Sequence record: NC_041973.1
Strand: one strand, 5' to 3'
Length of the DNA stretch: 64,000 nucleotides
Shown in pieces: positions 683 to 63,906 of the stretch. Both the position numbers and the translations under genes were made by a program. The notes under the pieces were generated by a model that saw nothing but the letters and a program-made list of their open reading frames with translations, was not told the DNA's origin and did no database searches. Positions within the stretch are counted from its first letter, which is position 1, and every line of letters begins with the position of its first letter.

Positions 683-718
683 AAAAGACCAGGGGGCTTA
701 CTCCTTGGTCTTTTATGC
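683..718 (+). terminator. Hairpin terminator with TTTTATGC tail
   Basis: GACCAGGGGG-CTTA-CTCCTTGGTC then TTTTATGC, just after the helicase stop. Confidence 0.7.
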
Positions 719-755
719 TTTCTTTCCTTTTCTTTTTGTTAAGGATACACAGCTT

Positions 756-1082
756 ATGAATGGTAACCGACCAGTAATGGTGATTGGCGGCATGGGGTTG
801 AGTCCTGCATTGATTGAGCGCTTACGGCAGTTAGACGACCTGGAGATCAAGTTGGTGGCCGATGTGGCAATCAGCGATATCCTGGAGTTTGAACCGGGTT
901 ATGCTCGCGGCTTGGTTCAGGCGATTCAGCATCAGCAACAACGTGAGTGGAATCCCTTCCGGGAAAGCTACTGGGATAACTTCATTACCCTGCGACGTAA
1001 AGAAGTCAACGGACATACCCGCATTCCTCCCAAGAAAGCCACCTGCAGCTCCCGTCGTAAGGGACGGAGGTTCAAGGGATGA
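756..1082 (+). CDS. Hypothetical protein with basic C-terminal tail
   Basis: AAGGA RBS before ATG 756; the ORF-track TTG at 705 lies inside the terminator. Confidence 0.6.
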   Translation: MNGNRPVMVIGGMGLSPALIERLRQLDDLEIKLVADVAISDILEFEPGYARGLVQAIQHQQQREWNPFRESYWDNFITLRRKEVNGHTRIPPKKATCSSRRKGRRFKG

Positions 1083-1402
1083 GCGAGATCGATTATCGTG
1101 CATTGAAGTATTGTGTCACCAAGGTTAGTCGGCGTATCCGCGACGGGGATTCCCGTAACGCGTCACGTTGCCTCTTCCAGTATGTTGAGACGCACGCCGC
1201 ATTACAAGACATGGCCGCCATTGATCGTCTTTTAGCACAGTGCCGAGAAAATAAGGTACCCCTAAAAGAGATCAACAAAGTCTCGTTACTGCGTGCATGC
1301 TCATGTTTACGCCCCCACCTTACAGAGTATCAGTCGTGTATGGACCTGTGGCGCCAGGACATTAAAGCGGCGGGTATGGAAAACTTATTAATAGGATTGT
1401 GA
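1079..1402 (+). CDS. Hypothetical protein
   Basis: ATGA start/stop overlap with the previous gene. Confidence 0.6.
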   Translation: MSEIDYRALKYCVTKVSRRIRDGDSRNASRCLFQYVETHAALQDMAAIDRLLAQCRENKVPLKEINKVSLLRACSCLRPHLTEYQSCMDLWRQDIKAAGMENLLIGL

Positions 1403-1403
1403 T

Positions 1404-1766
1404 ATGTCTGATTATTGTGCGGATATCTTTAAAGCGATCAGTTGCAAAACCCCCACCAAAGGCAGTGAACTCTACATCGATGATTTCGGTGATCTGTGGA
1501 TGTTGATTCCCAAGCTTAACCGCTTCGGTGAGCAGTCAGTGTTTCGTCAGTATGCCGGTAACCTTGCGTTGATGGCTGACCGCGGGCAGATGTATCAGGG
1601 TCAGTTATATGTGTGTGAGTTGATCCCGGGATATCACTTGGTGTTAACCAACCAAGCCGTGATGGTCAACCAATACAGCCTGGTGCAGTATGTGAAGACC
1701 CGTGCTGCGAAAGTGGAAGCGCGCTACCGTAAGAAACCCAAGCCGATGAGCCGAGCTTACGCGTAA
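1404..1766 (+). CDS. Hypothetical protein
   Basis: Tightly packed in the operon. Confidence 0.6.
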   Translation: MSDYCADIFKAISCKTPTKGSELYIDDFGDLWMLIPKLNRFGEQSVFRQYAGNLALMADRGQMYQGQLYVCELIPGYHLVLTNQAVMVNQYSLVQYVKTRAAKVEARYRKKPKPMSRAYA

Positions 1767-1796
1767 GCAACCTGACTGACAAGAAAGGATAGACCT

Positions 1797-2306
1797 ATGT
1801 TCGAATGGTTCTCTGTGTTATTGATGAAGTGGTTGACCCGAAAGGAAAAGAAACACAACAGGACAGTGCGGGTAGAACCGGTGGTGTTTGAACCGCAACT
1901 CAAACCCACCCCGCAGCCGTTGAGTAACGCGTTAAAAGAAGAAGCGCAGCAGATTCGGGACACCCTGCTGTTTGAGTCGCCGTTGAATAAATCCCGACCG
2001 ATCCCGACCAAACCCACCTTACGGGTAGTAAGACCCAGTACAAGCTCCTCACGCCCACACGGTAAGGCGAACGATGACAGCATGCTAACACATGCCTTAT
2101 TGATGCAGCAGGTGTTAGCAGACGATACAGCGCCGTCTGATCGTCATCATCGTACCCATGCCCCTCAGGATAACCACCGCCATGAAGACCGACCCTCGTA
2201 CCATTCCACGCCCACTCATCATAGCAGTTCTAGTAGTAGTCGCGATGATGATAACGGGAGTAATGATTACAGTAGCGGACCTAGTGACAGCGGTTCGTCT
2301 GATTAA
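1797..2306 (+). CDS. Hypothetical protein with His/Ser/Asp-rich low-complexity C-terminus
   Basis: AAGGA RBS; SSSSSRDDD...SDSGSSD tail. Confidence 0.65.
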   Translation: MFEWFSVLLMKWLTRKEKKHNRTVRVEPVVFEPQLKPTPQPLSNALKEEAQQIRDTLLFESPLNKSRPIPTKPTLRVVRPSTSSSRPHGKANDDSMLTHALLMQQVLADDTAPSDRHHRTHAPQDNHRHEDRPSYHSTPTHHSSSSSSRDDDNGSNDYSSGPSDSGSSD

Positions 2307-2345
2307 TACCCTCGATTAACCTTACGTAATAAGGAACGCCTCACC

Positions 2346-3203
2346 ATGACAGATCCCCACCCCATTCTCGCCGCAGCCATCGGAGAGCCCCAGGATGACG
2401 ATTGCTGGGATTTTCCGGGCGAGACTGTTGTTGGTCACGGCGACTTGATGTACACCAACATCCATAAGCCTCAGGCATTATGGAACGGTGTTATCCGGTC
2501 ACTGCGAAAACGTTTCCTTACTGAACCATCAATTAACCAAAAGGATACTTGTATGACCGAGCAATACAAGCCATCGCCTGACACCGGCTACCAAAACCTT
2601 TTCTGTGAGCCCGATGTTCTCAACACAAACGACCGAATTTATCCCCGCAAGAGTCTGGTAGCCTTACTGGAGAAATTCCCCTCCGATAATTTTCGTGGAA
2701 CACCCGCAGTTCGCTATCCTTTTATGCGCCGTCTGGCGGTGTTGTTTAAGATAGCGTTCTTACAGACCAGCCTTGACCAGAAAGCTTTATCCTTGAATAC
2801 ACGCCAGACCGGTAAACCACGGATCACGCAACATTCATTAACTAGTATCTGTAATTTAATGCACCAGCTGCATTATGAGCTCAGAGAGCTTCAGTATCAG
2901 AACCCCAATCCGATTGACCTGACCCGTTATGCAAGGCTGTTGAAGTGGGAAGCTGTAAAGACGGAAAAACCAGAGTGGCTTACATCCCTGGATGCAATTG
3001 AGTCACGCACCAAGTATAGCCGTCCGTTTGATGAAGATGTGGCGCATATGTACCTGAACCCCATAATGCCGATTCATAGACAAATTCAGGCGATGGAGCT
3101 TTTACCGGATTTGTTTGTGCCAACCAATCCTAAGTTCGGTAAAGCACTCACAGAACAACTCAACCGTGAAGCGCTGATTGCGCCACGCAAGCGCAGAGGT
3201 TAA
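2346..3203 (+). CDS. Hypothetical protein (contains an NxNxRIYP motif)
   Basis: AAGGA RBS; 285-aa ORF. Confidence 0.65.
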   Translation: MTDPHPILAAAIGEPQDDDCWDFPGETVVGHGDLMYTNIHKPQALWNGVIRSLRKRFLTEPSINQKDTCMTEQYKPSPDTGYQNLFCEPDVLNTNDRIYPRKSLVALLEKFPSDNFRGTPAVRYPFMRRLAVLFKIAFLQTSLDQKALSLNTRQTGKPRITQHSLTSICNLMHQLHYELRELQYQNPNPIDLTRYARLLKWEAVKTEKPEWLTSLDAIESRTKYSRPFDEDVAHMYLNPIMPIHRQIQAMELLPDLFVPTNPKFGKALTEQLNREALIAPRKRRG

Positions 3204-3205
3204 TC

Positions 3206-4345
3206 ATGGCACTGGATCAAGAGTATTATGAAAAGGCATTGGGTGTCCTACTGACCAAAGGCTTCTCTAACCAAGAAGCTGACCAGATCGCCACCACGCT
3301 TTCGGTATATCTCCCGATGCGTTTCATCAAAGCTGGTGTATGGGCACTCATGCCTTACGACCAGCATCCGGCTGATCCCCTGGCATTTAAACACATGCGG
3401 CTACTTGACCGTATCCCTGAGTTAAAGAAACCAGTGATCCTTCAAATGCCGACTGACTTTACTTACACCACGTATGGTCAGGAGTATTGCCCTGGTGCTG
3501 ACTCGCCGGTATACACCACAGGACCCGATGGCTATACACATCATCCGGTTGGTTGGGAAAGTGGCATTACTGGCATGCCAGGCGTAATGGGTCCGGCTGG
3601 GGATGACAATATTGAAGTCAGTGATCTGACCTGTGATCACCCCCAAAGCGATTTTAGACTATCGTTACCTGCCGAATCAATGGCTAGTCAGTTTACCGTT
3701 GTCATGCGGGTTGGTGGTAAGGCTATTAAAATGACGCTGGAAGAACTCATCCAGGAAATTGGAGGTTATGACAAACTTCCTGCTTCTGCACGTGCTGCGA
3801 TTGATCGTGTCATGGAAGAGCATCGCAATGCCCCTGTAACTACTGTATCTGTGCGTACACCCTTACCAGGCGGAGTATCTCAGGATCAAGCTGACTATCT
3901 GAAACTGGGCGACCTCAGCGACATCGAAGGGATCAAACGGGCTTACCCGATCATCGACGAGAAAACAGCTGAACGGATGTCTAAGTTGCATTGTCAGCTT
4001 AATCAGCATATCGCGCGGGTTCATCGTGAGCCGAGAGACGTTGAGGTATTTGATCTGCTTGCGGGCGATCACTCTCAGCGGATATTCCAATCTCGTCATG
4101 CTAAACGTCAGTACCCAAACAGTTTGTTTGAGAAGTTCCTGCCGGATCAAGCAGACATCGATGAACCCGAGGGCATGACTGTTAAAATCAAAACTCACAG
4201 CATACGTCACTTCGGTCACGGTCTTGAAATTAGCACGCCGTTGTTTGGTCAATCCCACAAAAACCCTACGGGACCACAAACCATGCCGGGGCTTGAGAAA
4301 GGCCGTGATGGTAAACGTAAACGTAATAAGAAGGGCAGACGATGA
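3206..4345 (+). CDS. Hypothetical protein, basic C-terminus
   Basis: 379-aa ORF closely following the upstream gene. Confidence 0.7.
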   Translation: MALDQEYYEKALGVLLTKGFSNQEADQIATTLSVYLPMRFIKAGVWALMPYDQHPADPLAFKHMRLLDRIPELKKPVILQMPTDFTYTTYGQEYCPGADSPVYTTGPDGYTHHPVGWESGITGMPGVMGPAGDDNIEVSDLTCDHPQSDFRLSLPAESMASQFTVVMRVGGKAIKMTLEELIQEIGGYDKLPASARAAIDRVMEEHRNAPVTTVSVRTPLPGGVSQDQADYLKLGDLSDIEGIKRAYPIIDEKTAERMSKLHCQLNQHIARVHREPRDVEVFDLLAGDHSQRIFQSRHAKRQYPNSLFEKFLPDQADIDEPEGMTVKIKTHSIRHFGHGLEISTPLFGQSHKNPTGPQTMPGLEKGRDGKRKRNKKGRR

Positions 4346-5115
4346 TCGATCGCAGTTTTGAAGGTGGCTGGGAGTCTATACTGCAATGGCATGGGTTTGC
4401 TGATCGTGCTAAACAGGGGCTGTCTGAGCACTTTGTTATCGTGGATTACGGAACCCTGGCAGAGGCCGCCGCTTTTGAGCAATTGACAGCGCTGGCGGAG
4501 AAAGTGAAGTATGTCTCAGTCGAGCGAGTTAAAGCCGTTGACTTTACCCCGACGCTTGTACGTACGCTACATGAACGTGAACATGGCTGGCATTACTGTC
4601 ATGTCATGGGGCGATGTGGTTACGGCGGCCACGGGATAATGATCGGTGCTAATGGCGGCTGGACAGGCGCGCACGGCGGTGCAGGTGATGCAGGCCCGCC
4701 CTCAACACCTGATGATGGCTCGATACTATACCAGACAGATTACAGTAGTCTCGGTATCCAGGACCGAGGATTTACTACACTGCAAGACATGATGGAAAAC
4801 GCCAGCCCTTACGATTACCCTCGGGAGATTCGTATAGTAGGGGATCGGCATGACCCGGATGTCAAAGCGTTAACGCAGGCAGTGATAAAGCTTGTTGGGC
4901 GTCGAGCTATCAAAGTAGTTAACATACCGCATGCCGACATGATGTATAGACCCGGCCCGCACCGAACGTATAACCTCGCGCCGGAGAAATACCGGGAGCG
5001 ATTTGACATTGCTTATAAACAAGCATTAGAAAATCTCAACAAGGCGGCCATCCTGCCGTATGCCCGTGGACCATTGCAGTCTGTTCTGGCATCAAAGCGC
5101 AAGAAACACTTTTAA
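4342..5115 (+). CDS. Hypothetical protein
   Basis: ATGA overlap with the upstream gene; 257 aa. Confidence 0.65.
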   Translation: MIDRSFEGGWESILQWHGFADRAKQGLSEHFVIVDYGTLAEAAAFEQLTALAEKVKYVSVERVKAVDFTPTLVRTLHEREHGWHYCHVMGRCGYGGHGIMIGANGGWTGAHGGAGDAGPPSTPDDGSILYQTDYSSLGIQDRGFTTLQDMMENASPYDYPREIRIVGDRHDPDVKALTQAVIKLVGRRAIKVVNIPHADMMYRPGPHRTYNLAPEKYRERFDIAYKQALENLNKAAILPYARGPLQSVLASKRKKHF

Positions 5116-5142
5116 TCAGTTCCCCTCAACAGGAGAGTAACC

Positions 5143-5448
5143 ATGTGTAACATGCGATCGGATTGGTTTGTAGAAGACGAACCGTCCATGAAGGAAAGTG
5201 ATCCGCATTTCGACAATAAAGCAATGGATGGCTTGATGGCAAAGATCCGTGACTTTGTTAAAGAGAGTGATGCGGCGACCTATGTCCCGCAAGCCCTGTT
5301 TGGCGAAGCCGGTAAAGTTAACCTGTCCAAAGTGGCAGCAGTAACCCGTCCGGTCGATCACCTCATTACCCTGAACCCAGTGGCCAATGACGGTGATGTG
5401 TATCTGGACTTCGCGCGAGGGAAGCGGCGTGGATACAAACCCCACTGA
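5143..5448 (+). CDS. Hypothetical protein
   Basis: AGGAG RBS. Confidence 0.6.
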   Translation: MCNMRSDWFVEDEPSMKESDPHFDNKAMDGLMAKIRDFVKESDAATYVPQALFGEAGKVNLSKVAAVTRPVDHLITLNPVANDGDVYLDFARGKRRGYKPH

Positions 5449-5659
5449 AGTTAACATCGAGCAGGCCAATCGTTATGAGGGGTCTACCGATGATTTGGTC
5501 CAGCAAGCTAATGATCGTGGTTTTCTCCAGGGGATTCGTATCACTTCTGGCGAGGACATCGATCCAAGCATTTGGACACCTGAGAAGATCGAAAAGTTGA
5601 AAGCTGCACTTCGACATATTCGTGACTCAGAACAACGCATCAAAGGTAGCCAGGGGTAA
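5429..5659 (+). CDS. Hypothetical protein (probable GTG start at 5429)
   Basis: GAGG RBS upstream of an in-frame GTG; followed by a terminator hairpin. Confidence 0.5.
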   Translation: MDTNPTEVNIEQANRYEGSTDDLVQQANDRGFLQGIRITSGEDIDPSIWTPEKIEKLKAALRHIRDSEQRIKGSQG

Positions 5660-5677
5660 CACCCTGGCTTTATGCCG
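5648..5677 (+). terminator. Hairpin-TTATGCCG element
   Basis: AGCCAGGG-GTAACA-CCCTGGCT + TTATGCCG. Confidence 0.65.
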
Positions 5678-5697
5678 GTTTAACGAGGACGTGTAAC

Positions 5698-6153
5698 ATG
5701 GAATCGAGCGGTTTGATTACGCTGGCAATGGTCTTTTTAACCTTCGTCATTGGGTTATGTTGTTGGCTGACGCGTTTCATACGCTATCACACCAACCGCT
5801 ACACCGTTGACACCAAGAAGGCGTTAAAGCAATTTGCCTGTAAGCTTGAAAGAGTACTGGATGTCCCGCAGCCGTATTCGCTGGCACAAAGCGAAATGAC
5901 AAGGCTGGATAATGAACTGAACGCTTCTCTCTTCCTCTTTGAAGAGATCACAGGGAAGATCCACGATGAAACCAGTCGACTGTACCTGGAGTCAAGTTTC
6001 ATGGTGGTGCGCGGCACTCAACACGATACCCCGATTCGTATCTGTGTGGCGAACACAATCTTCAGCCTGTCAACGACTAACCACAATCACCACAGCGTCA
6101 TGAAGGTCATCAACGACTTTAATAACCGCTTGGCTAAAATTGTAGAAAGTTAA
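5698..6153 (+). CDS. Hypothetical membrane protein with an N-terminal TM helix
   Basis: GAGGA RBS; hydrophobic LITLAMVFLTFVIGLCCWL. Confidence 0.65.
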   Translation: MESSGLITLAMVFLTFVIGLCCWLTRFIRYHTNRYTVDTKKALKQFACKLERVLDVPQPYSLAQSEMTRLDNELNASLFLFEEITGKIHDETSRLYLESSFMVVRGTQHDTPIRICVANTIFSLSTTNHNHHSVMKVINDFNNRLAKIVES

Positions 6154-6159
6154 GCACAG

Positions 6160-6198
6160 AAAAACTCAGACCTATATCACGCCCGTGATAGACCCCTC
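6160..6198 (+). promoter_or_regulatory. Candidate phage early promoter (ACCTATATCAC variant)
   Basis: Resembles the ACCTACATTA copies at 13828, 54046 and 63924; overlaps inverted repeat TATCAC-GCCC-GTGATA. Confidence 0.45.
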
Positions 6199-6228
6199 AA
6201 CCCCCATTAATCTTAAGTGAGTTCAATC

Positions 6229-6669
6229 ATGAAATACGTTTACACTATTATCGCTGTTCTTGGTTTCTCTTTTGCGTCTGTTGCAGTTGCTGCAGATCAA
6301 ACCAAAGTGGTGAAAGGTTGGTACGCCGAATACAACACGGCTTCGGTCCTGTATTCTGCTGGGCCAAAGAAAGGACAAGAATTGACCATGGAATGTGTAT
6401 TAGGTGGTTGGACGTTTGCGTATGCAGACAAGATGGGCGAGGAAGTAAACTCGGTCGATGATGACATGACAATCCTGGTCGACGGTGCAGCGTTTGCTGT
6501 GCCGAAGACTCAGGGTCAGCGTGAGAAGTTATACGCCGCCATTCAGCACGCTAAGAGTGGTATTCAATACAAGACCCACGCCTATGGTGTGTCGGTAGTA
6601 TTCCCAGTGGATGGCTTGGCCGAGATGTTTCGTGACCTGCCGTTTGAAGTCAGCCCGTGCATGAGCTAA
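6229..6669 (+). CDS. Putative secreted/periplasmic protein
   Basis: Sec-type signal peptide MKYVYTIIAVLGFSFASVAVA-A. Confidence 0.65.
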   Translation: MKYVYTIIAVLGFSFASVAVAADQTKVVKGWYAEYNTASVLYSAGPKKGQELTMECVLGGWTFAYADKMGEEVNSVDDDMTILVDGAAFAVPKTQGQREKLYAAIQHAKSGIQYKTHAYGVSVVFPVDGLAEMFRDLPFEVSPCMS

Positions 6670-6682
6670 AAGGAAAACAATT

Positions 6683-7384
6683 GTGATGACCCCTACCAAA
6701 CAAATTAAACGCAGCTACCGTCTGATCAAAGTGACTGCCGATGTAACACGGGATAACTGGGTCGGGAAAGACATCGACTTCATTGTTCAGCCCAATAAAG
6801 ACATGATCGACGACACCACACGTGGTGGACCTAATCGCCTGCTCGCGACATACATCGTGCTGGGTAACCGTATTCCTGTAACCGTTAACAGCCATGCGGC
6901 CATTACCCGGGAAGAAGGCTTGCAGGATCTGCAGGTCAGTATTGTCGATGGTCAGTCAAAATACATTGACATCAGTAATGTGCGTTACGTCGTGTCGTGT
7001 GAGTTAGAAGAGCACTTCACCTGCACCCCACCAAAAGAACCTTCGCTACTTGATCAGCTGGTTGGCGGACCAATGGGTGACCCAACCCATATGTTCATTA
7101 TCGATGAAAACTATAACGTCTTTGTCGGCACAGCGAACGATTCACAGGAAGATTATACCTTGGCTGGTCGTCTGATCAGTAACCTCGGTTCTCATGATGC
7201 TGAAGCTAATGATTTGGAGATTATCGGCAGTTATCCTGATGACCAAGGTGACCACTACTACGTCTCCATTGACTGGAACAAGTCATTCATTTCCGGGATT
7301 TCCAACAACGAGAAATGCGAATGGTTTAACCAACTCGATGCACTGGTAGCAATGTTGCTGGAAAAGATTAAAGTTACAGTGTAA
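6683..7384 (+). CDS. Hypothetical protein
   Basis: AAGGA RBS; 233 aa. Confidence 0.65.
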   Translation: MMTPTKQIKRSYRLIKVTADVTRDNWVGKDIDFIVQPNKDMIDDTTRGGPNRLLATYIVLGNRIPVTVNSHAAITREEGLQDLQVSIVDGQSKYIDISNVRYVVSCELEEHFTCTPPKEPSLLDQLVGGPMGDPTHMFIIDENYNVFVGTANDSQEDYTLAGRLISNLGSHDAEANDLEIIGSYPDDQGDHYYVSIDWNKSFISGISNNEKCEWFNQLDALVAMLLEKIKVTV

Positions 7385-7392
7385 GTAATATC

Positions 7393-7425
7393 AGGCAGGG
7401 GGAATACTCTCTGCCTTTATTTTTT
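7393..7425 (+). terminator. Intrinsic terminator
   Basis: AGGCAGGGGG-AATA-CTCTCTGCCT + TTATTTTTT. Confidence 0.7.
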
Positions 7426-7496
7426 GTGGTATTCTGCCACAGAAAACTACTGGCCATACTACCAGTGGTATTCACTCAATAGACTGCGAGGAATAA

Positions 7497-8057
7497 ATGA
7501 TGTTTGATAAAATTGAAGGATTGGCTGATGTGATCGAGCTGAAGTACGGCTTGCTTGATATCACCTATCACCGCGGTAACGACAAAGACCTCTATGTCGA
7601 TGTCTTTTATAAAGACACACGCTTGTCAAGCCGGCGTGACCTGACCGATGCCCTGGACTACGCTTATATCGGTGTGCGGTTGTGTAACCCTCAGTTCGGT
7701 GCCTGGTGTTATGGTGCTGAGCGTGAGTTGGTCATGTCGCATTTAATGGACGCATTGAGAATGGTGGGTAAGCCTGCACCCAGGGCGGTTGAAGACTCAC
7801 GGTTAAAGACAGGGATTCATCGTACCATTCAGCTGCTTACCGAGAACGGTAACCTGCATCCGAAAGAGGATGATATCCGCATCACGATCCATCGCGCGGC
7901 ACGAGTGGACTACGGTTCAACAGATACCATCGAAACAACCATCAGCATGACCAACCACGATATTACTATTAGTAAGCGACGGATTGAGTGTGTCAGTGGT
8001 GAGATGCGGGATTTACAAGCATGGGCGCGTAAGTTATATGCGAGACACTTTGAATAA
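7497..8057 (+). CDS. Hypothetical protein
   Basis: GAGGA RBS. Confidence 0.65.
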   Translation: MMFDKIEGLADVIELKYGLLDITYHRGNDKDLYVDVFYKDTRLSSRRDLTDALDYAYIGVRLCNPQFGAWCYGAERELVMSHLMDALRMVGKPAPRAVEDSRLKTGIHRTIQLLTENGNLHPKEDDIRITIHRAARVDYGSTDTIETTISMTNHDITISKRRIECVSGEMRDLQAWARKLYARHFE

Positions 8058-8067
8058 CGAGGTAGCT

Positions 8068-8469
8068 ATGGGTAGTGCGTACTGTAAGGTTGTGGCAATC
8101 CACAGCATCTATGTACACAGTGCAGCGATGGAAGCGGTATCCGCTAAATACAGGAGCTGTTTTCGTTTGGCGTATAACTTCGTGAATGCTACGCAGTTAG
8201 CCCAACAGCTACGGCTTGCCGTGAAGAACAGCGAAATCCTGATTGTCGATACCAGTGACTTTACTCGCCGGGCACTTAACAATCTTAATGAGCAGTTCTA
8301 CTGCATCTATCCGGGTGAGGAACAACATTCCGATATGTCAGTCAAGCATCAGCGTAACTGTCGCATGACGCCTGACTGTATTCATATCGAAATTCAAAAC
8401 CTCAGCGACTTTGAGCGCTTAAACTGGGAAGTTCGACCCGATGCAGGGTTAAGGATATCACGCCGTTAG
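8068..8469 (+). CDS. Hypothetical protein (start probably ATG 8068)
   Basis: GAGGT RBS before ATG 8068; avoids a long overlap with the upstream gene. Confidence 0.55.
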   Translation: MGSAYCKVVAIHSIYVHSAAMEAVSAKYRSCFRLAYNFVNATQLAQQLRLAVKNSEILIVDTSDFTRRALNNLNEQFYCIYPGEEQHSDMSVKHQRNCRMTPDCIHIEIQNLSDFERLNWEVRPDAGLRISRR

Positions 8470-8471
8470 AA

Positions 8472-8523
8472 CGGCATATAGGCCCTCCGTAATGGAGGGC
8501 CTTTTATGACATCTTTTTTTTTT
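8472..8523. terminator. Bidirectional terminator between convergent genes
   Basis: CGGCATA-TAGGCCCTCC-GTAAT-GGAGGGCCT-TTTATGAC followed by a T10 run. Confidence 0.75.
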
Positions 8524-8534
8524 GGTTTACAGCG

Positions 8535-8981
8535 TTATACCAGGCGCTGAGTTAACTGCGAACTATATTGAATAGCGTGATAGGTCGCAGGTTTCTCAAG
8601 CTGCTCGGTGCAGCGGTAGACCGGGGTCTTCATAAAAGGGCAACCGGCATTCATTAATGCCTCACGGTTGCTGGGCGACTCATCCACGCGAATCACCACA
8701 TCCGTGGACTGGAAGCCAAAGACTTCCCGCTTCGTTGCAGTATATTCTGCATCCAGCACCACGATCTTACGGTTGATCACCAGCTTCACGGCCACCGGGT
8801 ATTTGATTACCAGGTCTGACCCTAAGCCCGCCAAGACAAACTTAATGACAAACTTCTTAAGTCCATTTAGCAACTGACTCTCACTGGCCCAACTTTTAAC
8901 AATCTGCAGCATGTGTGTATTTCCACTCATATAAGGGGAAGTTAAGAAAAGCAACCTGAGGGCCCGTCCGTGATCCCTCAT
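8535..8981 (-). CDS. Hypothetical protein (start uncertain)
   Basis: Follows the 8988 ORF after a 7-nt gap and ends at the bidirectional terminator. Confidence 0.5.
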   Translation of the reverse strand: MRDHGRALRLLFLTSPYMSGNTHMLQIVKSWASESQLLNGLKKFVIKFVLAGLGSDLVIKYPVAVKLVINRKIVVLDAEYTATKREVFGFQSTDVVIRVDESPSNREALMNAGCPFMKTPVYRCTEQLEKPATYHAIQYSSQLTQRLV

Positions 8982-8987
8982 AATGTA

Positions 8988-11020: not shown

Positions 11021-11037
11021 TATGCTTATCCTTACCT

Positions 11038-11505: not shown

Positions 11506-11597
11506 AACGGGTCCTTGAGGTGATTTATCTTGTGGCTTACATATATTGACACTACTAATGTCAACAATTACAACGTTTATACGGAAAAGGCACGGTC

Positions 11598-13816: not shown

Positions 13817-13827
13817 GGATATCTGAA

Positions 13828-13838
13828 ACCTACATTAT
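13828..13838 (+). promoter_or_regulatory. Candidate phage early promoter ACCTACATTA
   Basis: Exact 10-mer also at 54046 and 63924; each copy lies ahead of an accessory region. Confidence 0.55.
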
Positions 13839-13870
13839 AAGAGGGAGATAACTTTTATAAGGAACGTACC

Positions 13871-15381: not shown

Positions 15382-15386
15382 ACCCC

Positions 15387-15415
15387 AGGAGAGCTTCGGC
15401 TCTCCTTTTATGCCC
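15387..15415 (+). terminator. Hairpin (UUCG loop)-TTTATGCC element
   Basis: AGGAGAGC-TTCG-GCTCTCCT + TTTATGCCC. Confidence 0.75.
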
Positions 15416-15430
15416 ATTAAGGAACATGTC

Positions 15431-20587: not shown

Positions 20588-20602
20588 TTGATCATTTGAT
20601 CA

Positions 20603-20653
20603 GCATAAGGAGAGGCCTCGCGCCTCTCCTGTTTATGCCGTCTTTTTTTTTTT
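20603..20653. terminator. Bidirectional hairpin GCATAA...TTATGCCG plus T-run
   Basis: GGAGAGGC-CTCGC-GCCTCTCC between convergent genes. Confidence 0.8.
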
Positions 20654-21677: not shown

Positions 21678-21748
21678 AACTCCACCTCAAAATAAAATCC
21701 CGTTAGCAAGGGTTCTGGTTCTCTAATACATGACTTATAGGATTTAGC

Positions 21749-21778
21749 CGGCATAACGGAGCAGGCAACGCCTACTCC
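21749..21778 (-). terminator. Hairpin-TTATGCCG element
   Basis: Minus strand GGAGTAGGC-GTT-GCCTGCTCC + GTTATGCCG. Confidence 0.65.
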
Positions 21779-22796: not shown

Positions 22797-22853
22797 GCAT
22801 CATCCTTCTAGAATGAGTACCTTGACGACCTACTCGCGTCATAGCATTCCAGC

Positions 22854-22897
22854 CGGCATAAGGGAGTGGATACCCTGACCGTAGCCAAGGTATCCAC
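22854..22897 (-). terminator. Hairpin-TTATGCCG element downstream of the DNA polymerase gene
   Basis: GTGGATACC...GGTATCCAC stem, then CTTATGCCG on the minus strand. Confidence 0.6.
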
Positions 22898-29247: not shown

Positions 29248-29299
29248 CGGCATAAAGGCCTGGCCTTCCTTGCGGAGGGCCAGAGCCTTGCTTATGCCG
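29248..29299. terminator. Symmetric bidirectional element CGGCATAA-hairpin-TTATGCCG
   Basis: Long stem between convergent genes; 8-nt flanks are exact reverse complements. Confidence 0.8.
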
Positions 29300-32249
29300 T
29301 TAAGCTTGACTTCGCTGAGGTATGTTTCAGGAAGGTAATGGAGATGTCTTCTTTCACCGTTAAGGTTTCATCCGACGCCACATCTACCCGTTTCTTGATG
29401 GCACACCGCATGGTGTCATCTAATGCGGTCATGACTTTGATGTCACCGTTCACCCCGAGTGCTTTAAACTCGATGTCAACCACATCAGACGTTCGATACG
29501 GTTTCAGCGCATCAACCAGATCTGTTAGACCAAAGGTCGCCCGGGCAATCACAGCAGCAACCGCTGGACTCACTTTCGCTGACAGGTTGTCACGCAACGA
29601 GGTGTTCTTGTAACCGTTGTCGGTCATGTAGAAGGTTACGTCAAAACCAATCGCGGCGGAGATCTGACGAGACTCTCGTGCATTGGCAATCACATCGATC
29701 AAGCCCAGGGTTTGTTTCGGTCGTAACGACACCGTGGTCTTCTCAAGCAACTGCCGCTTCACCGTAACCATATCTTGCGTCACCCAGTCAACCAGATCAG
29801 AGATCACATCAGTGATGTATGTCTTATCCAGCGGGTTACCGGTAAAGTAGTAGACACCATCCAGACCCACCACATCGATCTCACGCACCACCACACGTTC
29901 ATTAAGCGGGATAGGGTTACCTTGCTCATCCGACTTAATGTCACCCACCCGATAACGATAGATGATGTTGTTATCAGCGTCATACATGATGTCGCCTTTG
30001 GCGTGCAGGATGATCGGTTGGTTGTTGCTGTCAAACACCAATTGGTTAGTGACCGCATCACGCTGATACACTGTCTCTGCATAGCGCCATGGTACATCGA
30101 CATCATACTTCTGATACTCGATGTCAGACACCACTGAACGTGACCGCTGATACAGATAGGTCAGGGCTTTGCCCATCACCACATCGTAGGACTGCTCCGT
30201 CACCACCACGAACTGCTGATCCAGGTAGAAACTCCCCAGCTTCTTATCACTGTCGCTGTACACCACATCGTTCGGTGATTTGGCCACCGCAATACAGTTC
30301 AGCAGGATGAAGTTCTTTTCCAGTACCGAGCGCAACTTAGACGGTGCATTACCAAACTGACCAAAGGAGGTCAGGATGATCTCGTCCTCGTTGGTGATGT
30401 CGAGATTACTGTCAATGTCAAACTGCCAGACACGTTCGCGGGTTGCTGTCCGACCGATCATCACGCCATTGAGGTAGCCGTAGTTGCTTTCCCCTTCTGG
30501 CATGAACAGTAACTGACACGCCACATCGCTGTCTGCCAGGTCTTTGTAGTAATCACCTGAACTCGTCACCACGGTTGCTCTAAAGCCATTGGTGGTTTTG
30601 GTAAAGGTAAAACTGTCCGCCACAAGTTCAACACCGATGGAGTTGTTCTCATAGCTGAATACCCGACCTGCTACAGAAGGACGATCCAGATCATAGACCC
30701 GAGTGGTAAACGCATCGTTATTCGCATCCAACACCATGTAGAAAGGTGAGAACATGAACACGTTGTTGTTGACCGTCAAGGCACGACTGTCTAATCCCGC
30801 ACCGTTGATCGTAGCCAGCTCCGCATCGGATACCATGTTGTAGATGCCGTTGACCAGCCGGTATAAGGCGGTCGGGGTGATGGTGATGCGATTGCCGTTG
30901 TCACGCACTGCGGTATTACTGACCAACTGCAACATCGATGACTGCAGGGTAATGATCCCGGTACCGGCCGGCGTGTTGATACCAGACTTGTTGGTCTGCG
31001 GATTCAGTGACCGTGTCGCATGGTAAATACGTTGCGTCACTGTGTCTTCTGATTTCAATGCCCCGTAGCCTAAATCGACCAGGGTTTGTGAGACCTGCGC
31101 TTCAGTAATCGGTAAGACCGTTTTATTGGCCGAATAGATCACCGCTTCCCGCAACGCTTCAACACTGAGACCGTTCACCCCACCGCTGACACCGCTGCTG
31201 ATCGACATGGTCTTTTCATTAAAGACGGTCAATGGGGTAGAGTACTTATCCAACACCCGATCTTCGTAATTGAAGTCACGGTAGACCGCACTGATTGAAG
31301 AAGACTGCAGCGCCAGCGTTTCGATAACCAGGTTACCTTTACTGGTGTAGACATCCGCCCGCACCTGACGACCCACTGCCAGATTGTTGGAGATGTAGAT
31401 TTCCGGTAGCACAACCTTCACTGAGTCTTCTAACACCTGGGCGACGAAGGTCAGCTTGGTGTTGTCATAGACCAGGTCATCATGGGTGACGTACGCCTCT
31501 TCCCACTCATCGGTCACATTCGCCCGCGTAAAGACGCGCAGGTAATAGAACTGATCACCTTTTAATGGATAGGTATTGCGATACCCACTCATGCTGGTAA
31601 TCTGACCGTAATAAGGCTGGGCTTTGAACTGACGTAAAGGTACCGTGATGTAGAGCAGTTCAACCCCGTTGAAGATCGCAGTGCGCCAGGTTAACTGGTT
31701 GGTTTCAACCGTCAGTAACGGGCTGGGTTGCGACACATCGTACACCACCACAAAGCCGCCATGTTTCATCACCCGGATTTCAATCGGATACTCCAGACTG
31801 AAGGTGACATCCATCACCGTGATTTCCGTGTTGCGCGGAATCACCATCTTCGAGTAGATGCTGTCGATGTCATCGCTACCACTGCTGTCGAGTTGCACCG
31901 CTCGTGCCCGAATCTCATCGGCATTGAAAATGAAGTTGGTGGTGATACGTGACGGAGTACAGAAACGGTTCTTGTAATCCTCATCACTCATGTTGCGATA
32001 CAGATCTTCATACGTCCGCGCCATCTTCGGGTAGTACGCCGTATAAAGGTCTTCATGGTTTTGCATCACCGCTGAACCGGTCAGGGCAACCAGCTCAAAA
32101 GCAAACATCGCAGGGTTGGTGGCATTCATGATATCAATCGTGCCGTCCATGTTTTGGTCTAACAGATCGAGTGTGTAGTCCATCATCAACGATGGATCAT
32201 TACGCAGGTCGATCATTTTCTGTTTACGTACGTCGATGCTGTCGCTCAT
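29292..32249 (-). CDS. Baseplate wedge-like structural protein (phiKZ gp87-like)
   Basis: 985 aa; SGGVNGLSVEALRE...ITEAQ resembles the baseplate-J/T4 gp6 GG.D.ES..ELR motif; synteny. Confidence 0.7.
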   Translation of the reverse strand: MSDSIDVRKQKMIDLRNDPSLMMDYTLDLLDQNMDGTIDIMNATNPAMFAFELVALTGSAVMQNHEDLYTAYYPKMARTYEDLYRNMSDEDYKNRFCTPSRITTNFIFNADEIRARAVQLDSSGSDDIDSIYSKMVIPRNTEITVMDVTFSLEYPIEIRVMKHGGFVVVYDVSQPSPLLTVETNQLTWRTAIFNGVELLYITVPLRQFKAQPYYGQITSMSGYRNTYPLKGDQFYYLRVFTRANVTDEWEEAYVTHDDLVYDNTKLTFVAQVLEDSVKVVLPEIYISNNLAVGRQVRADVYTSKGNLVIETLALQSSSISAVYRDFNYEDRVLDKYSTPLTVFNEKTMSISSGVSGGVNGLSVEALREAVIYSANKTVLPITEAQVSQTLVDLGYGALKSEDTVTQRIYHATRSLNPQTNKSGINTPAGTGIITLQSSMLQLVSNTAVRDNGNRITITPTALYRLVNGIYNMVSDAELATINGAGLDSRALTVNNNVFMFSPFYMVLDANNDAFTTRVYDLDRPSVAGRVFSYENNSIGVELVADSFTFTKTTNGFRATVVTSSGDYYKDLADSDVACQLLFMPEGESNYGYLNGVMIGRTATRERVWQFDIDSNLDITNEDEIILTSFGQFGNAPSKLRSVLEKNFILLNCIAVAKSPNDVVYSDSDKKLGSFYLDQQFVVVTEQSYDVVMGKALTYLYQRSRSVVSDIEYQKYDVDVPWRYAETVYQRDAVTNQLVFDSNNQPIILHAKGDIMYDADNNIIYRYRVGDIKSDEQGNPIPLNERVVVREIDVVGLDGVYYFTGNPLDKTYITDVISDLVDWVTQDMVTVKRQLLEKTTVSLRPKQTLGLIDVIANARESRQISAAIGFDVTFYMTDNGYKNTSLRDNLSAKVSPAVAAVIARATFGLTDLVDALKPYRTSDVVDIEFKALGVNGDIKVMTALDDTMRCAIKKRVDVASDETLTVKEDISITFLKHTSAKSSLTA

Positions 32250-39002: not shown

Positions 39003-40373
39003 ATGTCCGCGATTAATGACTTTCTATTTACTGCGGGCATGGAGGGGTTTAACGACCCCTCCTCTATACCGCCCGTTGGTATAGTTGTGCCCTTTTTTGG
39101 TGTTGAGGAGTTCGCCGAAGCGGATGCTGAACAATCTGTACGTATGACAGAGATGAACCAGCAAGCCGAAGCAATTCAACGCCTGCAACAAACGCTGGTC
39201 TACATCAACGCTCACCGTCCGACCTTTGACCGTGAGAATGCTGCCGTCGTGCAGCAAGCACTGGGTGAAGTGCAGGTACTGATGCCCGACATGGAAGACC
39301 CGGTCACCATCATGGGGTCGCTGGAGCATTATACGCCGGCTTACACCAACCACCTGCTTGCGCACGGTATTGAAGGCATTGGTGATAAGATCCTGAGCGT
39401 GGTCAAGAAGATCATCGAACTCTTGAAGAAAGGTTATGCCTTCTTGAGTAAAGCCATCCAGGCAAAGGGTGTGGTCTTCGGTAAACAGAAGCGCGAACTC
39501 GATGACCTCAATGCGTGGTTTAAAGAGCAACGCAAAAGCAACGATAAGCCCGCTACCACCACCGGTAATGAACCTAAGGTTGTTACGGTCACTGCCCCGA
39601 CCTATCTGTACACCGTCGACAGTAACAAACCGTTAGCGGCAGATCGCTTAGCAAGCGAAGTGGCAAAGTACAATAAATTCCTGCAGGCCTTCTCGGTTGA
39701 TTTCATCCGGGCGCATATTACCCTGGGTGATCTCTATATTCGTGCACTGGGTAGTCTGGATATTGCCAGCACCAGTAACGAAGAGTTGTTCACCAAGATG
39801 TTTAAGGGCCAGTTTAAATACCAGGCCTCGGGTGCATCGCTGTACACCAAACGCAACGGCGAGATGTGTGATATCGAAACAGTTGGGTTGATTGGCGGGA
39901 TTGGCTTTAAAGCCTCCATCGCGAATATCCTGGTCGCACCGCTTGAGATGACTGCAGACGGTTCTAACCAGCGTAAGTTCTTCAAGCAGATGAACGGGTT
40001 ATACAACTACAGTTTTGTCTCCAAAATAAAAATGGATGGCAGTACGGTAGGGAATACCCCAATCTATGCTTGCAGTCTCGCTGACGCTGAGCGGTTGGTG
40101 AATCAACTTGATATGTTGACCAACTGGATGATTAACAGTCAACACGACGAAGAGATCCGTGACTTTAATAAGCGGGTGACTGAGTGTGTGGATAAGCTGG
40201 CTGATCGTGCCGGTCGTCTGGGTAATGACCGCAGTGATTTTATCACTACTGTGATCAACGCCTTGTCTGGTATCTCCAGTGGTCTGGAAAATGTGTCTCG
40301 TGGCATGAATCAGCAAACGAACACATTGATCAACAACTTGCGTGAGTACGTTACCAAATCCACGAAAGCGTAA
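39003..40373 (+). CDS. Processed head protein, paralog family member
   Basis: AGME|GF, SLE|H, GIE|G. Confidence 0.7.
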   Translation: MSAINDFLFTAGMEGFNDPSSIPPVGIVVPFFGVEEFAEADAEQSVRMTEMNQQAEAIQRLQQTLVYINAHRPTFDRENAAVVQQALGEVQVLMPDMEDPVTIMGSLEHYTPAYTNHLLAHGIEGIGDKILSVVKKIIELLKKGYAFLSKAIQAKGVVFGKQKRELDDLNAWFKEQRKSNDKPATTTGNEPKVVTVTAPTYLYTVDSNKPLAADRLASEVAKYNKFLQAFSVDFIRAHITLGDLYIRALGSLDIASTSNEELFTKMFKGQFKYQASGASLYTKRNGEMCDIETVGLIGGIGFKASIANILVAPLEMTADGSNQRKFFKQMNGLYNYSFVSKIKMDGSTVGNTPIYACSLADAERLVNQLDMLTNWMINSQHDEEIRDFNKRVTECVDKLADRAGRLGNDRSDFITTVINALSGISSGLENVSRGMNQQTNTLINNLREYVTKSTKA

Positions 40374-40391: not shown

Positions 40392-40419
40392 GGCCCTGCA
40401 GGAAACGCGGGGCCTTATC
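40392..40419 (+). terminator. Hairpin in the intergenic leader (terminator or processing site)
   Basis: GGCCCTGC-AGGAAAC-GCGGGGCC + TTATC. Confidence 0.45.
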
Positions 40420-40466
40420 ACAATACGATCGTATTTAATTTCATGAAATTAAGGTAGAGACTCACT

Positions 40467-41822: not shown

Positions 41823-41842
41823 TCGAGTAACTTGACAACCTT

Positions 41843-41876
41843 AGGGGGAGAGGGGTTTCCCTCTCCTCTTATACCG
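41843..41876 (+). terminator. Hairpin-TTATACCG variant element
   Basis: AGGGGGAGAGGG-GTTT-CCCTCTCCTCT + TATACCG. Confidence 0.7.
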
Positions 41877-41893
41877 ACCAAGAAGGTGAATGC

Positions 41894-44236: not shown

Positions 44237-44576
44237 TAACAGTAACAAGGCGTTGTATAATGCAGCGCGCTTGCCTGTTCTTTACGAGTACCCGCATGAC
44301 TTCACCCCGTATGCCCGTTTACTGGCTAACGAGAAGCAAGGCGCACAACCTTCGCAGGCGTTTGCTGAGATGCTGGCTAAGGTAACGGGTGATCCCTGGA
44401 CACTGACCCCTAAGCAACCGTATACCCTGTACGGTGCCAAGGTGACGTTGATTGGTGAGAACCAGCCCAACTTCCCAACCAGTAAACGGTTTCCTTACGT
44501 CCTGGTGTTGCAGTTGAGTACCAGGTATCAAGAACGCAAGTTATACCTGAGCTTTAAGATCTTGAAATCGAGCTGA
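44229..44576 (+). CDS. Hypothetical protein (start ATG 44229)
   Basis: AGGAGG RBS overlapping the upstream gene end. Confidence 0.6.
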   Translation: MTDNSNKALYNAARLPVLYEYPHDFTPYARLLANEKQGAQPSQAFAEMLAKVTGDPWTLTPKQPYTLYGAKVTLIGENQPNFPTSKRFPYVLVLQLSTRYQERKLYLSFKILKSS

Positions 44577-44613
44577 GCATAAGGAGAGGGCAAACGCCCT
44601 CTCCTCTATGCCG
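44577..44613. terminator. Bidirectional GCATAA-hairpin-TATGCCG element
   Basis: GGAGAGGGC-AAAC-GCCCTCTCC between convergent genes. Confidence 0.8.
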
Positions 44614-45315
44614 TTATGCTTGTGGTGCTTCGCCACTGCCATCAGCTGGCGTGGTTTCATCTTCACTGAACGTATTGGGAATACGAGGCAGATCACCAAT
44701 CACAGTTGCGGAGGTTACCGCGTTCTTGAAAGTCCAGTAACGCTCAAGGTACGCATTATAAGACTCCAGCAGACGCTCAACCACGTCGATCACTTCAACC
44801 GGTAAGAGTTCAACCATTTGACCGTCAACAGTACGCAGACGAAATTTGGTTTCATCGGAGGCCCCGACGCGTTTCTCACCGACCACACGCATGCCCATCA
44901 GGTTAGCGCGTTCTTCAGCAGTCATCACCACTTTATAGTCTGTGCTTTCATGAGTAAATGCAATGCCGTTGTTAAGATCATTACTGATGATCTCTTTGGC
45001 ACTTTGCAGTGACATGTCTTTACCCATTGCCAGGTTGGCTGCGAGCTCTTCTTCATTATAAGCCCGCACATCCCAGAATTGGTAATAAAGACCGTCATCA
45101 CCTTTAACCGGTGTACCTTCGGTCACCACATCGCCATCCGGTCGATCAACCATGTTGACCATGGCGTAAGGACGAGGAAGGTTCAGCAGCTTCTCAGACT
45201 CGATGGTGCTACCCCAGCTGGTCTGCATGTTGTCCTGACGGGCATCATACATGTACTTCGGGTAAGCCATATCCTCGATACGGACGAGGGGTGTAGAATT
45301 CGTTACTGTAGTCAT
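44614..45315 (-). CDS. Tail-fibre assembly chaperone-like protein (DUF4376-like C-terminus)
   Basis: Directly downstream of the fibre gene; N-terminal YARVNMVDRP.GDVV.EG.PV...DG.Y.Q.W.V pattern and C-terminal helical domain. Confidence 0.6.
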   Translation of the reverse strand: MTTVTNSTPLVRIEDMAYPKYMYDARQDNMQTSWGSTIESEKLLNLPRPYAMVNMVDRPDGDVVTEGTPVKGDDGLYYQFWDVRAYNEEELAANLAMGKDMSLQSAKEIISNDLNNGIAFTHESTDYKVVMTAEERANLMGMRVVGEKRVGASDETKFRLRTVDGQMVELLPVEVIDVVERLLESYNAYLERYWTFKNAVTSATVIGDLPRIPNTFSEDETTPADGSGEAPQA

Positions 45316-54045: not shown

Positions 54046-54056
54046 ACCTACATTAT
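54046..54056 (+). promoter_or_regulatory. Candidate phage early promoter ACCTACATTA
   Basis: Identical 10-mer to 13828; 35 nt before the RBS-bearing ATG 54090. Confidence 0.55.
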
Positions 54057-57210: not shown

Positions 57211-57243
57211 AGCAGGAGTAAGGAAACTTACTCCGCTTATGCC
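57211..57243 (+). terminator. Hairpin (GAAA loop)-TTATGCC element
   Basis: GGAGTAAG-GAAA-CTTACTCC + GCTTATGCC. Confidence 0.7.
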
Positions 57244-57268
57244 AATTTAATTTAACCGGACGTGTATC

Positions 57269-58176: not shown

Positions 58177-58183
58177 ACTTAAT

Positions 58184-58251
58184 CGGCATAACCCCCTGAG
58201 AGAGAAGCGCAATGCTTCTCTCTCAGGGATGCCTGAATCTCTTTTTTTTTT
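58184..58251 (+). terminator. Long hairpin element with GGCAT...ATGCC closure and T10 run
   Basis: CCCTGAGAGAGAAGC-GCAAT-GCTTCTCTCTCAGGG. Confidence 0.8.
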
Positions 58252-58371
58252 AGTCTGGTTAAATATAGTGGATAGAGAATTAACTTGAATAACAAAAAAT
58301 AAAGCAAAGTAATATCAACGCCGGTAAGGGCTACAACAGTTGTTCTAATTTTCAGGCACGTAGCCTAGGAG

Positions 58372-63051: not shown

Positions 63052-63078
63052 GCACCAGGCGCGAGAGTAATCCGTAGC

Positions 63079-63118
63079 GCATAAACAGAGGAGGAGCATT
63101 GCTCCTCCTCTTATGCCG
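63079..63118 (+). terminator. GCATAA-hairpin-TTATGCCG element after the capsid gene
   Basis: GAGGAGGAGC-ATT-GCTCCTCCTC + TTATGCCG; no poly-T. Confidence 0.75.
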
Positions 63119-63156
63119 TGTGATTTTATAGAGGCACACACCAGGGGCGGATAGTA

Positions 63157-63870
63157 ATGCTTGAATTACTAATGATAGGAAGGAAGAAAGCAACAGGGGG
63201 TGGGACACCTGCGGATCTTGGACCAGGACCTGCCTCCATGCTTGGGTATTACGAGCGACCGGATGGCGGTAACTCAGGGTACTTCGGTACCTTTACTAAT
63301 TTTGTTTCAACAGCCGGGTTATGTCAATCTATCGGGTTAACTGCAGGTTACCAGCAAGTTGAGAATGCCACTTGGCATAAGTTTCTGTTAGATGGTAAGA
63401 TCCTCTTTATACCAACCAACTATATCGTACGTAATCTTCACTGGAACTACATTTATAATGCCGGGGCAGTATACGGGGATGACAGTTTTGGTCTTTATCA
63501 AAGCCCAACGCCAACAGCACAGAGTGCCATGCATGTGACGGTGGATGGTCGGGTTTATCGCGTGCGGTTAGTATCTATCTCAAATGGCGATCCGGCTCTG
63601 ACAGGCCAAATCGATAAAACCACCGAATGGGGTCGGTTGATGTATCCGATTGATCCAACGGTAGATGCTAGTAATACTGAAGCGGGTAAGAAATGGGGTA
63701 ACGTGGGACTGCTTTTGAGTTCAACGCAGATTCTGGCAAAGGAGACCTACGCCAGCACACCTGCTAGTAGCCTGGTTGTGGTTACGAATTCTACGACACG
63801 CTCCGCTCAATCTAAATCATCCGCACCCAGTAACTGCACCTGGCGTCCGATTCTTGAACTTGTGCAGTAA
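63157..63870 (+). CDS. MLELLM-family virion structural protein
   Basis: WHKFLLDGKILFIP and YRVRL motifs typical of a phiKZ-like paralogous structural family. Confidence 0.7.
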   Translation: MLELLMIGRKKATGGGTPADLGPGPASMLGYYERPDGGNSGYFGTFTNFVSTAGLCQSIGLTAGYQQVENATWHKFLLDGKILFIPTNYIVRNLHWNYIYNAGAVYGDDSFGLYQSPTPTAQSAMHVTVDGRVYRVRLVSISNGDPALTGQIDKTTEWGRLMYPIDPTVDASNTEAGKKWGNVGLLLSSTQILAKETYASTPASSLVVVTNSTTRSAQSKSSAPSNCTWRPILELVQ

Positions 63871-63875
63871 GCTCT

Positions 63876-63906
63876 AAGAGGAAGGCTCCGGCCTCCTCTT
63901 ATGCCG
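63876..63906 (+). terminator. Hairpin-TTATGCCG element
   Basis: AAGAGGAAGGC-TCCG-GCCTCCTCTT + ATGCCG. Confidence 0.7.

Follow-up and report, generated by a model that had tools for sequence, protein, structure and literature searches.

Transcription termination has been mapped in two Pseudomonas jumbo phages. In phiKZ, 133 termination sites are known, and 61 of these terminators share a common stem-loop followed by a TTAT region, with the tail YTTATKYYGT in IUPAC (International Union of Pure and Applied Chemistry) code; the motif terminators were classed as intrinsic by ARNold (Putzeys et al. 2024, PMC10914365). In phage 201phi2-1, a motif strongly resembling that of phiKZ (motif A) was found at 59 of 132 termination sites (PMC11512511). 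Here, we analysed a stretch of 64,000 nt (NC_041973.1; "the window"), which is 100% identical to the final 64 kb of Erwinia phage vB_EamM_RAY (RAY; KU886224.1, 271,182 bp, Agricanvirus), window base 1 being base 207,183 of the RAY record. RAY is a chimallin-encoding, nucleus-forming jumbo phage, and how the non-canonical polymerases of such phages stop is not understood. The window contains GC-rich hairpins followed by the short tail TTATGCC(G), and we conclude that these elements are very likely the transcription terminators of RAY, its version of the conserved phiKZ-type terminator. Transcription signals are described neither for the Agricanvirus family as a whole nor in the publication on RAY (PMC10299810), MEME motifs being "not followed further", and a literature search for the motif string returned as its sole match a sequencing primer in the announcement of phage Miami.

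By the annotation of its record, RAY possesses the split set of multisubunit RNA polymerases (RNAPs) that goes with phiKZ-type terminators, i.e., a non-virion RNAP (nvRNAP; subunits gp2, gp223, gp248 and gp249) and a virion RNAP (vRNAP; subunits gp154, gp163, gp164 and gp270). The whole RAY record was scanned as seven loci, each separately; within the window, each listed site was folded and read, and an unbiased list of perfect-stem hairpins was compiled in addition. A first-pass annotation, made from the sequence alone, had reported about 14 GC-rich hairpins flanked by TATGC. Thirteen of the 14 were found again with TATGC at −1 to +9 nt from the hairpin on the strand given, namely 683, 5648, 8472 (minus), 15387, 20603 (both strands), 21749 (minus), 22854 (minus), 29248 (both), 44577 (both), 57211, 58184 (minus), 63079 and 63876 (we keep these positions as names), and the variants TATACCG at 41843 and TTATC at 40392 are present, too. 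Site 16917 was rejected as a member: its stem is weak (5 bp), the motif follows after a gap of 11 nt, and it lies antisense to both neighbouring genes.

TATGCC by itself is not enriched in the window (32 copies found vs 26 ± 5 expected); only the composite of hairpin and tail is informative. Genome-wide, TATGC adjoins the stem in 53 of 169 intergenic hairpins (tail window of −4 to +15 nt from the stem end), vs at most 12 for any permutation of the same five letters. The 43 nt upstream fold with −10 kcal/mol or less for 52 of the 66 genomic TATGCCG copies (median −16.9), as opposed to about 22% for 180 control hexamers. TTATG, TATGC, ATGCC and TTTAT are the four commonest 5-mers downstream of RAY hairpins, with TGCCG in fifth place. 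A T directly precedes TATGC in 50 of 56 copies, a C follows it in 44 and then a G in 43, and the gap between stem and tail measures −1 to +3 nt in 49. These column counts match Y, T, TAT, G, Y, Y, G, and the RAY tail, with 53 strand-specific copies, fits the published phiKZ tail. An origin by chance or as a start-codon artefact was rejected, as the ATG of the tail opens reading frames of mostly 3–31 codons and the bases after the ATG are conserved.

The uninterrupted U-tract that directly follows the stem of a canonical intrinsic terminator is largely missing, with T-run tails in 5 of 78 sense hairpins; a T-run located further downstream accompanies 12 of the 56 tailed copies. A scan for canonical terminators over window bases 1–20000 caught only 679 and 7393, i.e., two of the five elements there, which shows that most copies lack a U-tract. 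Five individual sites had been singled out for this absence; it holds for 5648, 44577, 57211 and 63876, whereas 63079 has a short TTTT. Only the tail is common to the RAY copies, their stems and loops being completely different, just as the first reading had it. Because no stem can be aligned among the copies and preselection of hairpins renders pair counts circular, a covariance model was replaced by the motif-anchored fold test and the comparison of orthologues. Rfam 15 yielded no match at the gathering score within the window. The 5′ arms of RAY stems are mostly purine-rich and Shine-Dalgarno-like (GGAGAGG, AGAGGAGG), the 3′ arms forming the pyrimidine complement, for example at window positions 15387–15406, 20608–20630, 44582–44605 and 63087–63111.

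The tails are arranged according to the direction of the genes. At co-directional junctions, 27 of 78 hairpins read in sense carry a TATGC tail vs 2 of 60 read in antisense (Fisher p = 4e-6); any TTAT or TATG tail was found on 49 of these 78 sense hairpins and a plain T-run only on five. All 17 convergent junctions with a gap contain a GC-rich hairpin, with a TATG-type tail on both strands at 13 and on the minus strand only at four. Sense-oriented placement downstream of genes and bidirectionality between convergent ones are both features of the phiKZ-type terminator. The GCATAA noticed 5′ of some hairpins is explained by the same arrangement, since, where two genes converge on a bidirectional terminator, it is the tail belonging to the other strand. 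At 29248, the 8-nt flanks are indeed exact complements, and at 29292 and 44614 the motif doubles as the GCA-TAA end of the minus-strand genes gp290 and gp301. Of the 17 divergent junctions in RAY, 16 contain no TATGCC, the exception being one hairpin-less TTATGCC 25 nt before the gp316 start; these promoter-only junctions carry TATGT and CCTAYATTA motifs instead. As divergent junctions must hold promoters and need no terminator, the lack of TATGCC there fits a role in termination.

To assess conservation, 13 window elements were aligned with the orthologous sites of Erwinia phage AH06, whose chimallin is 92.6% identical; the flanks show 70–87% identity. Only 9 of 136 tail positions (6.6%) and 18 of 258 stem positions (7.0%) had changed, vs 17 of 58 in the loops (29%) and 896 of 4047 in the flanks (22%; tail vs flank, p = 2e-6). 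Two stem pairs show compensatory changes, at 8472 (C:G to T:A, both tails kept) and at 57211 (A:T to G:C, tail kept). Where only one side of a stem pair has changed in a unidirectional element, a G·U pair always remains on the sense strand (plus for 5648, 15387, 40392 and 41843, minus for 22854), and a mismatch would result on the other; this speaks for a hairpin formed by the sense RNA. The tail of 5648 is kept; the hairpin and tail at 39041 are unchanged except for the last base of the tail, within flanks of 82% identity. In the 29248 element, the central hairpin (window 29260–29283) is exactly reverse-complemented in AH06 (L021:29523-29546) and both flanking tails are unchanged. Two marginal members lose the tail: in 683 the TATG is lost and the T-rich run kept, and in 40392 the tail has changed and the stem still pairs. 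Altogether, the alignments clearly indicate that purifying selection acts on the tail and preserves pairing on the sense strand.

Beyond AH06, we searched 50-kb samples, not whole genomes, for TATG within −1 to +6 nt of stem ends. The TATG tail was enriched in phiKZ, 201phi2-1, Goslar, Erwinia phage pEa_SNUABM_48, Proteus phage 10, Klebsiella phage Eowyn, Xanthomonas phage RTH11 and Ralstonia phage RSF1 (p from 8e-4 to 2e-14). In most of them TATG is followed by C, C, G, in the Pseudomonas phages by Y, Y, G or T, and in RSF1 a C stands before TATG. An unrelated phage was sought as control via the DnaB helicase; only related jumbo phages were returned, and a segment of the Escherichia coli chromosome was used instead, which gave no signal (1/127). 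In the 50-kb samples of SPN3US, RisingSun, Vibrio phage pTD1 and Bacillus phage AgentSmith, the TATG tail was not found; SPN3US and pTD1 possess U-rich tails, often embedding TTTAT. The TATG tail is therefore lineage-restricted, and the TTAT core may be older than it. Stems vary freely between phages, and homologous positions, e.g., downstream of chimallin, hold unrelated stems in distant phages.

This last observation bears on the possibility that the elements are DNA-level or selfish repeats, either palindromes like repetitive extragenic palindromic (REP) sequences or miniature inverted-repeat transposable elements (MITEs), or signals for replication, recombination or packaging, with an incidental link to transcription. 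They are indeed dispersed, palindromic and mostly intergenic, they occupy about 40 loci, and RAY encodes SbcCD-like nucleases acting on hairpin DNA. We nevertheless regard this explanation as highly improbable. The copies resemble each other in the short tail only, and the full-length similarity expected of REP or MITE families was found neither between copies nor between orthologous sites. Moreover, the tail points the same way as the gene upstream of it, and DNA cruciforms would not favour stem changes that keep G·U on the sense strand only.

Mapped RNA ends are available for phiKZ, and we placed the termination coordinates from supplementary Table S4 (bioRxiv version) of the phiKZ study on the phiKZ sequence. 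In each of the 12 hairpin + T(T)ATG sites of the 20–70 kb region, the distance from the G of TATG to the mapped 3′ end is −1 to +3 nt, which places this end 4–8 nt past the stem; hence, the RNA stops within the A/U-rich portion of the tail, with the subsequent bases located at or past its 3′ end. TATG-tailed hairpins mark the ends of transcription units driven by early (P012 to T013), middle and late promoters alike, and so both polymerases seem to respond to them. Together with gene orientation, purifying selection and the fit to the phiKZ and 201phi2-1 motifs, these 3′ ends support what the first-pass annotation had proposed, a phage-specific termination or 3′-end signal in which the tail replaces poly-U. 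Its further suggestion of a role in mRNA handling at the phage nucleus received no support, as evidence was found neither for nor against it.

The same annotation had considered that termination could be coupled to re-initiation, and the element would then be a composite in which transcription stops and restarts at the same spot. The phiKZ nvRNAP starts at the G of TATG, and the late promoter core T(-3)ATG(+1) is necessary for initiation (PMC4666361; PMC7618050). In RAY, the tails of 5648, 15387 and 57211 lie only 20–35 nt ahead of the next start codon, and the hairpin-less TTATGCC before gp316 sits at a divergent junction. However, none of the 12 phiKZ tail TATGs is a mapped start; the starts belong to distinct early, middle or late promoters 25–58 nt further on. 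The phiKZ late promoters are not conserved downstream of TATG (PMC4666361), unlike the RAY tail. Convergent junctions carry tails on both strands at places where a promoter would yield only antisense RNA, and promoter-only junctions lack TATGCC except for that one copy. A terminator that is at once a promoter thus appears unlikely.

As to the mechanism, we prefer a model in which the hairpin drives release at the level of the polymerase, where a short, weak hybrid is followed by a G/C-rich block; this is less certain than the terminator role itself. The nascent sense-strand RNA would fold into the GC-rich hairpin, directly followed by the short tail of a pyrimidine, U, UAUG and then C, C, G. 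By analogy with the phiKZ 3′ ends, RAY transcripts would end at these tails, released at or a few nt from the G of UAUG, about 4–8 nt past the stem, and release would be intrinsic to the polymerase. The short A/U-rich stretch would take the place of the U-tract by forming a weak RNA:DNA hybrid, with the following G/C-rich bases located at or just ahead of the active site. Both the virion and the non-virion polymerase appear to respond, and between convergent genes one hairpin with a tail on each strand would stop transcription from both sides. If RAY transcripts end like those of phiKZ, the conserved C, C, G would be unable to act through the released transcript, suggesting that these bases are read on the DNA or the hybrid by the polymerase, e.g., as a pause signal. 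Release at the level of the polymerase is consistent with the 4–8 nt geometry, the response of both polymerases and the conservation beyond the RNA end.

A serious rival, to which we assign a lesser but real probability, is factor-dependent termination or RNA processing, in which a phage protein binds or cuts the hairpin with its tail and makes or protects the 3′ end; candidates are a release factor (for instance, either of the two SNF2-family ATPases), an endoribonuclease or a 3′-end-binding protein. The conservation of the tail across phages of Pseudomonas, Erwinia, Xanthomonas and Ralstonia hosts points to a phage-encoded reader, and the tail is too U-poor for a classical intrinsic terminator. 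In every sampled genome that was inspected (RAY, AH06, phiKZ, 201phi2-1, Goslar, Eowyn and Proteus phage 10), the gene immediately downstream of the nvRNAP beta/beta′ genes encodes an SNF2 helicase; in RAY this is gp250 (window 1–671), an SNF2/SWI-family member. A second SNF2 helicase of RAY, gp131, is virion-associated and packaged, so that the pair mirrors the two polymerases. Both were reported without known function (PMC10299810), and the pairing suggests a role in transcription. Yet a factor that sees only the finished RNA leaves the conservation of C, C, G unexplained if these bases lie at or beyond the 3′ end as in phiKZ, ARNold classed the phiKZ motif terminators as intrinsic, and no direct evidence ties any protein to the tail.

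Several points weigh against the terminator interpretation or its polymerase-level variant. About 30% of the sense-side hairpins (24 of 78) have neither a TTAT nor a TATG tail. Related phages with multisubunit RNAPs, namely SPN3US, RisingSun, pTD1 and AgentSmith, do without the TATG tail, and the polymerase family as such therefore does not require it. The stem composition published for phiKZ, with a C-rich 5′ arm and a G/purine-rich 3′ arm, is not that of RAY. The positions of the RAY 3′ ends are transferred from phiKZ, the chimallin of which is only about 24% identical, and 3′ ends mapped in vivo can stem from processing or trimming instead of release by the polymerase. Finally, a tail with G, C, C, G forms a stronger hybrid than a U-tract does, which makes purely intrinsic release not self-evident. 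With regard to stem polarity, Eowyn resembles RAY, and RTH11 and 201phi2-1 resemble phiKZ; since composition also varies among these other phages, polarity looks like a lineage-specific and not a defining trait.

The mapped phiKZ 3′ ends cluster at the same G that is +1 in late promoters, which is a concrete mechanistic lead and the most interesting loose end. One tentative and on balance doubtful idea is a dual code, in which the late-promoter-core TATG, when met during elongation just after a hairpin, would hold the nvRNAP in register and trigger release at its G. Such a code seems to be limited to a single branch of the nucleus-forming phages, being absent from the U-rich-tailed SPN3US-, RisingSun- and pTD1-like phages, and its occurrence may track either the lineage of the polymerase or the SNF2 ATPases linked to the RNAPs.

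The elements of the window are compiled in the following table.

Table. Hairpin + tail elements and variants in the 64-kb window of RAY (window coordinates)
Element	Position	Strand	Context and remarks
Hairpin, TTTTATGC tail and T-rich run	681..721	+	Just after non-virion SNF2 helicase gene gp250; most canonical-looking copy
8-bp GC-rich hairpin, TTATGCCG tail, without U-tract	5648..5678	+	20 nt upstream of gp260 start codon
Variant: hairpin, TTAT then T-run	7393..7424	+	After gp262; added to earlier list
Bidirectional element, minus tail ATATGCCG, plus tail TTTTATGACA then T10	8471..8513	both	Convergent gp264/gp265
Hairpin, TTTTATGCCC tail	15387..15416	+	After gp273; tail identical in AH06
Bidirectional element, plus tail TTTATGCCG then T11, minus tail TATGCTG	20600..20641	both	Convergent gp281/gp282
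Hairpin, GTTATGCCGG tail	21748..21778	-	After minus-strand gp284
14-bp hairpin, TTATGCCGG tail	22853..22897	-	After minus-strand DNA polymerase gene gp285
Bidirectional element, exactly complementary 8-nt tails	29248..29300	both	Convergent gp289/gp290; plus tail overlaps last gp290 codons
Variant: hairpin, TCTATACCG tail (TATACCG)	39041..39072	+	50 nt past gp296 stop, within annotated gp297 5′ end; added to earlier list
Variant: hairpin, TTATC tail	40392..40422	+	After gp297; weakest member
Variant: 13-bp hairpin, TATACCG tail	41842..41877	+	After gp298; tail kept in AH06
Bidirectional element, plus tail CTATGCCG then second TTATGC overlapping gp301 stop, minus tail TTATGCTC	44574..44622	both	Convergent gp300/gp301
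Hairpin, GCTTATGCCA tail	57215..57245	+	After gp312
16-bp hairpin, GTTATGCCGA tail; plus side T10 run, no TATG	58183..58229	-	Convergent gp314/gp315
11-bp hairpin, TATGCCG tail; antisense side only weak TATGCG	63076..63119	+	After major capsid gene gp317
Hairpin, TTATGCCGA tail; promoter-like CCTACATTA 18 nt further on	63875..63907	+	After gp318

Several of the elements touch on annotated gene starts. The 39041 element lies inside the annotated 5′ end of gp297 (region at window 39003–39072), and either the gp297 start was called too far upstream or the element is an intragenic attenuator. The annotated start of gp50 (record 46077) is an ATG within a terminator tail and was probably mis-called. 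The ATG of the 15387 tail (window 15411–15433) is in frame with gp274, seven codons upstream of its annotated start. At 9 of the 17 convergent junctions, a run of 8–11 T follows the element on the plus strand and never on the minus strand, in the window at 8503–8523, 20631–20652 and 58229–58252; at four convergent junctions outside the window, the plus-strand tail and its T-run form a nearly identical string.

With respect to initiation, the motif CCTAYATTA occurs 19 times in the RAY record vs about four expected, always on the plus strand and nearly always in intergenic regions. Three copies are in the window, at 13829–13837, 54047–54055 and 63925–63933 (record 221011, 261229 and 271107), and 16 more elsewhere in RAY. 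They have A/T-rich sequence upstream and a start codon 40–90 nt downstream, and several are located 20–50 nt past a hairpin + tail element. Early (virion-RNAP) promoters of phiKZ that were mapped by experiment contain a ...CTATATTAC... block with which CCTAYATTA agrees, and the motif therefore probably constitutes the early promoter of RAY. Sigma-70-type promoter-like sites are depleted in window bases 1–20000 (10 found vs 22 ± 4.5 expected from shuffles), which agrees with a phage that makes no use of the host enzyme. In the tail-fibre gene gp302 (window 47167–47298), stretches of 48–60 nt match tail-protein genes from phages of Mycobacterium and Escherichia at 88–93% identity. Shared gene ancestry was rejected for them, because the matches fall in a collagen-like repeat and reflect its composition.

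The stop signal was already known from mapping in two Pseudomonas phages; new is that it very likely also represents the dominant terminator of an Erwinia phage. It is common to at least nine genera on very different hosts and missing from another branch of the family, and the finding bears on how the polymerases of nucleus-forming jumbo phages stop. The contrast between TATG-tailed and U-rich-tailed lineages is sharp enough for a comparative search for the polymerase or accessory feature that reads the signal. For the annotation of RAY and its relatives, the elements provide ready-made operon boundaries and flag start codons that were probably mis-called.

Compared with described systems, the RAY element is closest to the phiKZ terminator motif. 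Both consist of a GC-rich stem-loop followed by a TTAT tail, both are intergenic, sense-oriented and bidirectional between convergent genes, and both occur in phages with two multisubunit RNAPs. In contrast to the phiKZ motif, the RAY tail is less degenerate (G, then C in 44 of 56 and G in 43 of 56 copies), its stems are purine-rich in the 5′ arm, and its function is inferred. Motif A of 201phi2-1 likewise comprises hairpins followed by TTATG or TTATT (50-kb scan), but T often follows TTAT there, and a second motif (B) lengthens the hairpin, for which its authors suggest a link to antitermination; nothing comparable was seen in RAY. With the canonical intrinsic terminator the element shares a GC-rich RNA hairpin downstream of genes, the U/A-rich first bases of the tail and, in phiKZ, a 3′ end 4–8 nt after the stem; it differs in that most RAY copies lack a U-tract and conserve a specific sequence instead, a tail that the Escherichia coli control does not have. 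The phiKZ late promoter core TATG consists of the same four bases, but late promoters have neither the upstream hairpin that the tail requires nor the conservation downstream of TATG that is seen in RAY. Sequence-specific viral terminators without a classical U-tract hairpin also exist elsewhere, such as the class II signal of T7 RNAP and the early termination signal of poxviruses. In these cases, a virus-encoded polymerase responds to a short specific sequence with no adjacent hairpin, and early termination in poxviruses needs a virion-packaged ATPase of the SNF2 family. The polymerases are unrelated and no homology is implied, but this ATPase recalls the paired SNF2 helicases of RAY.

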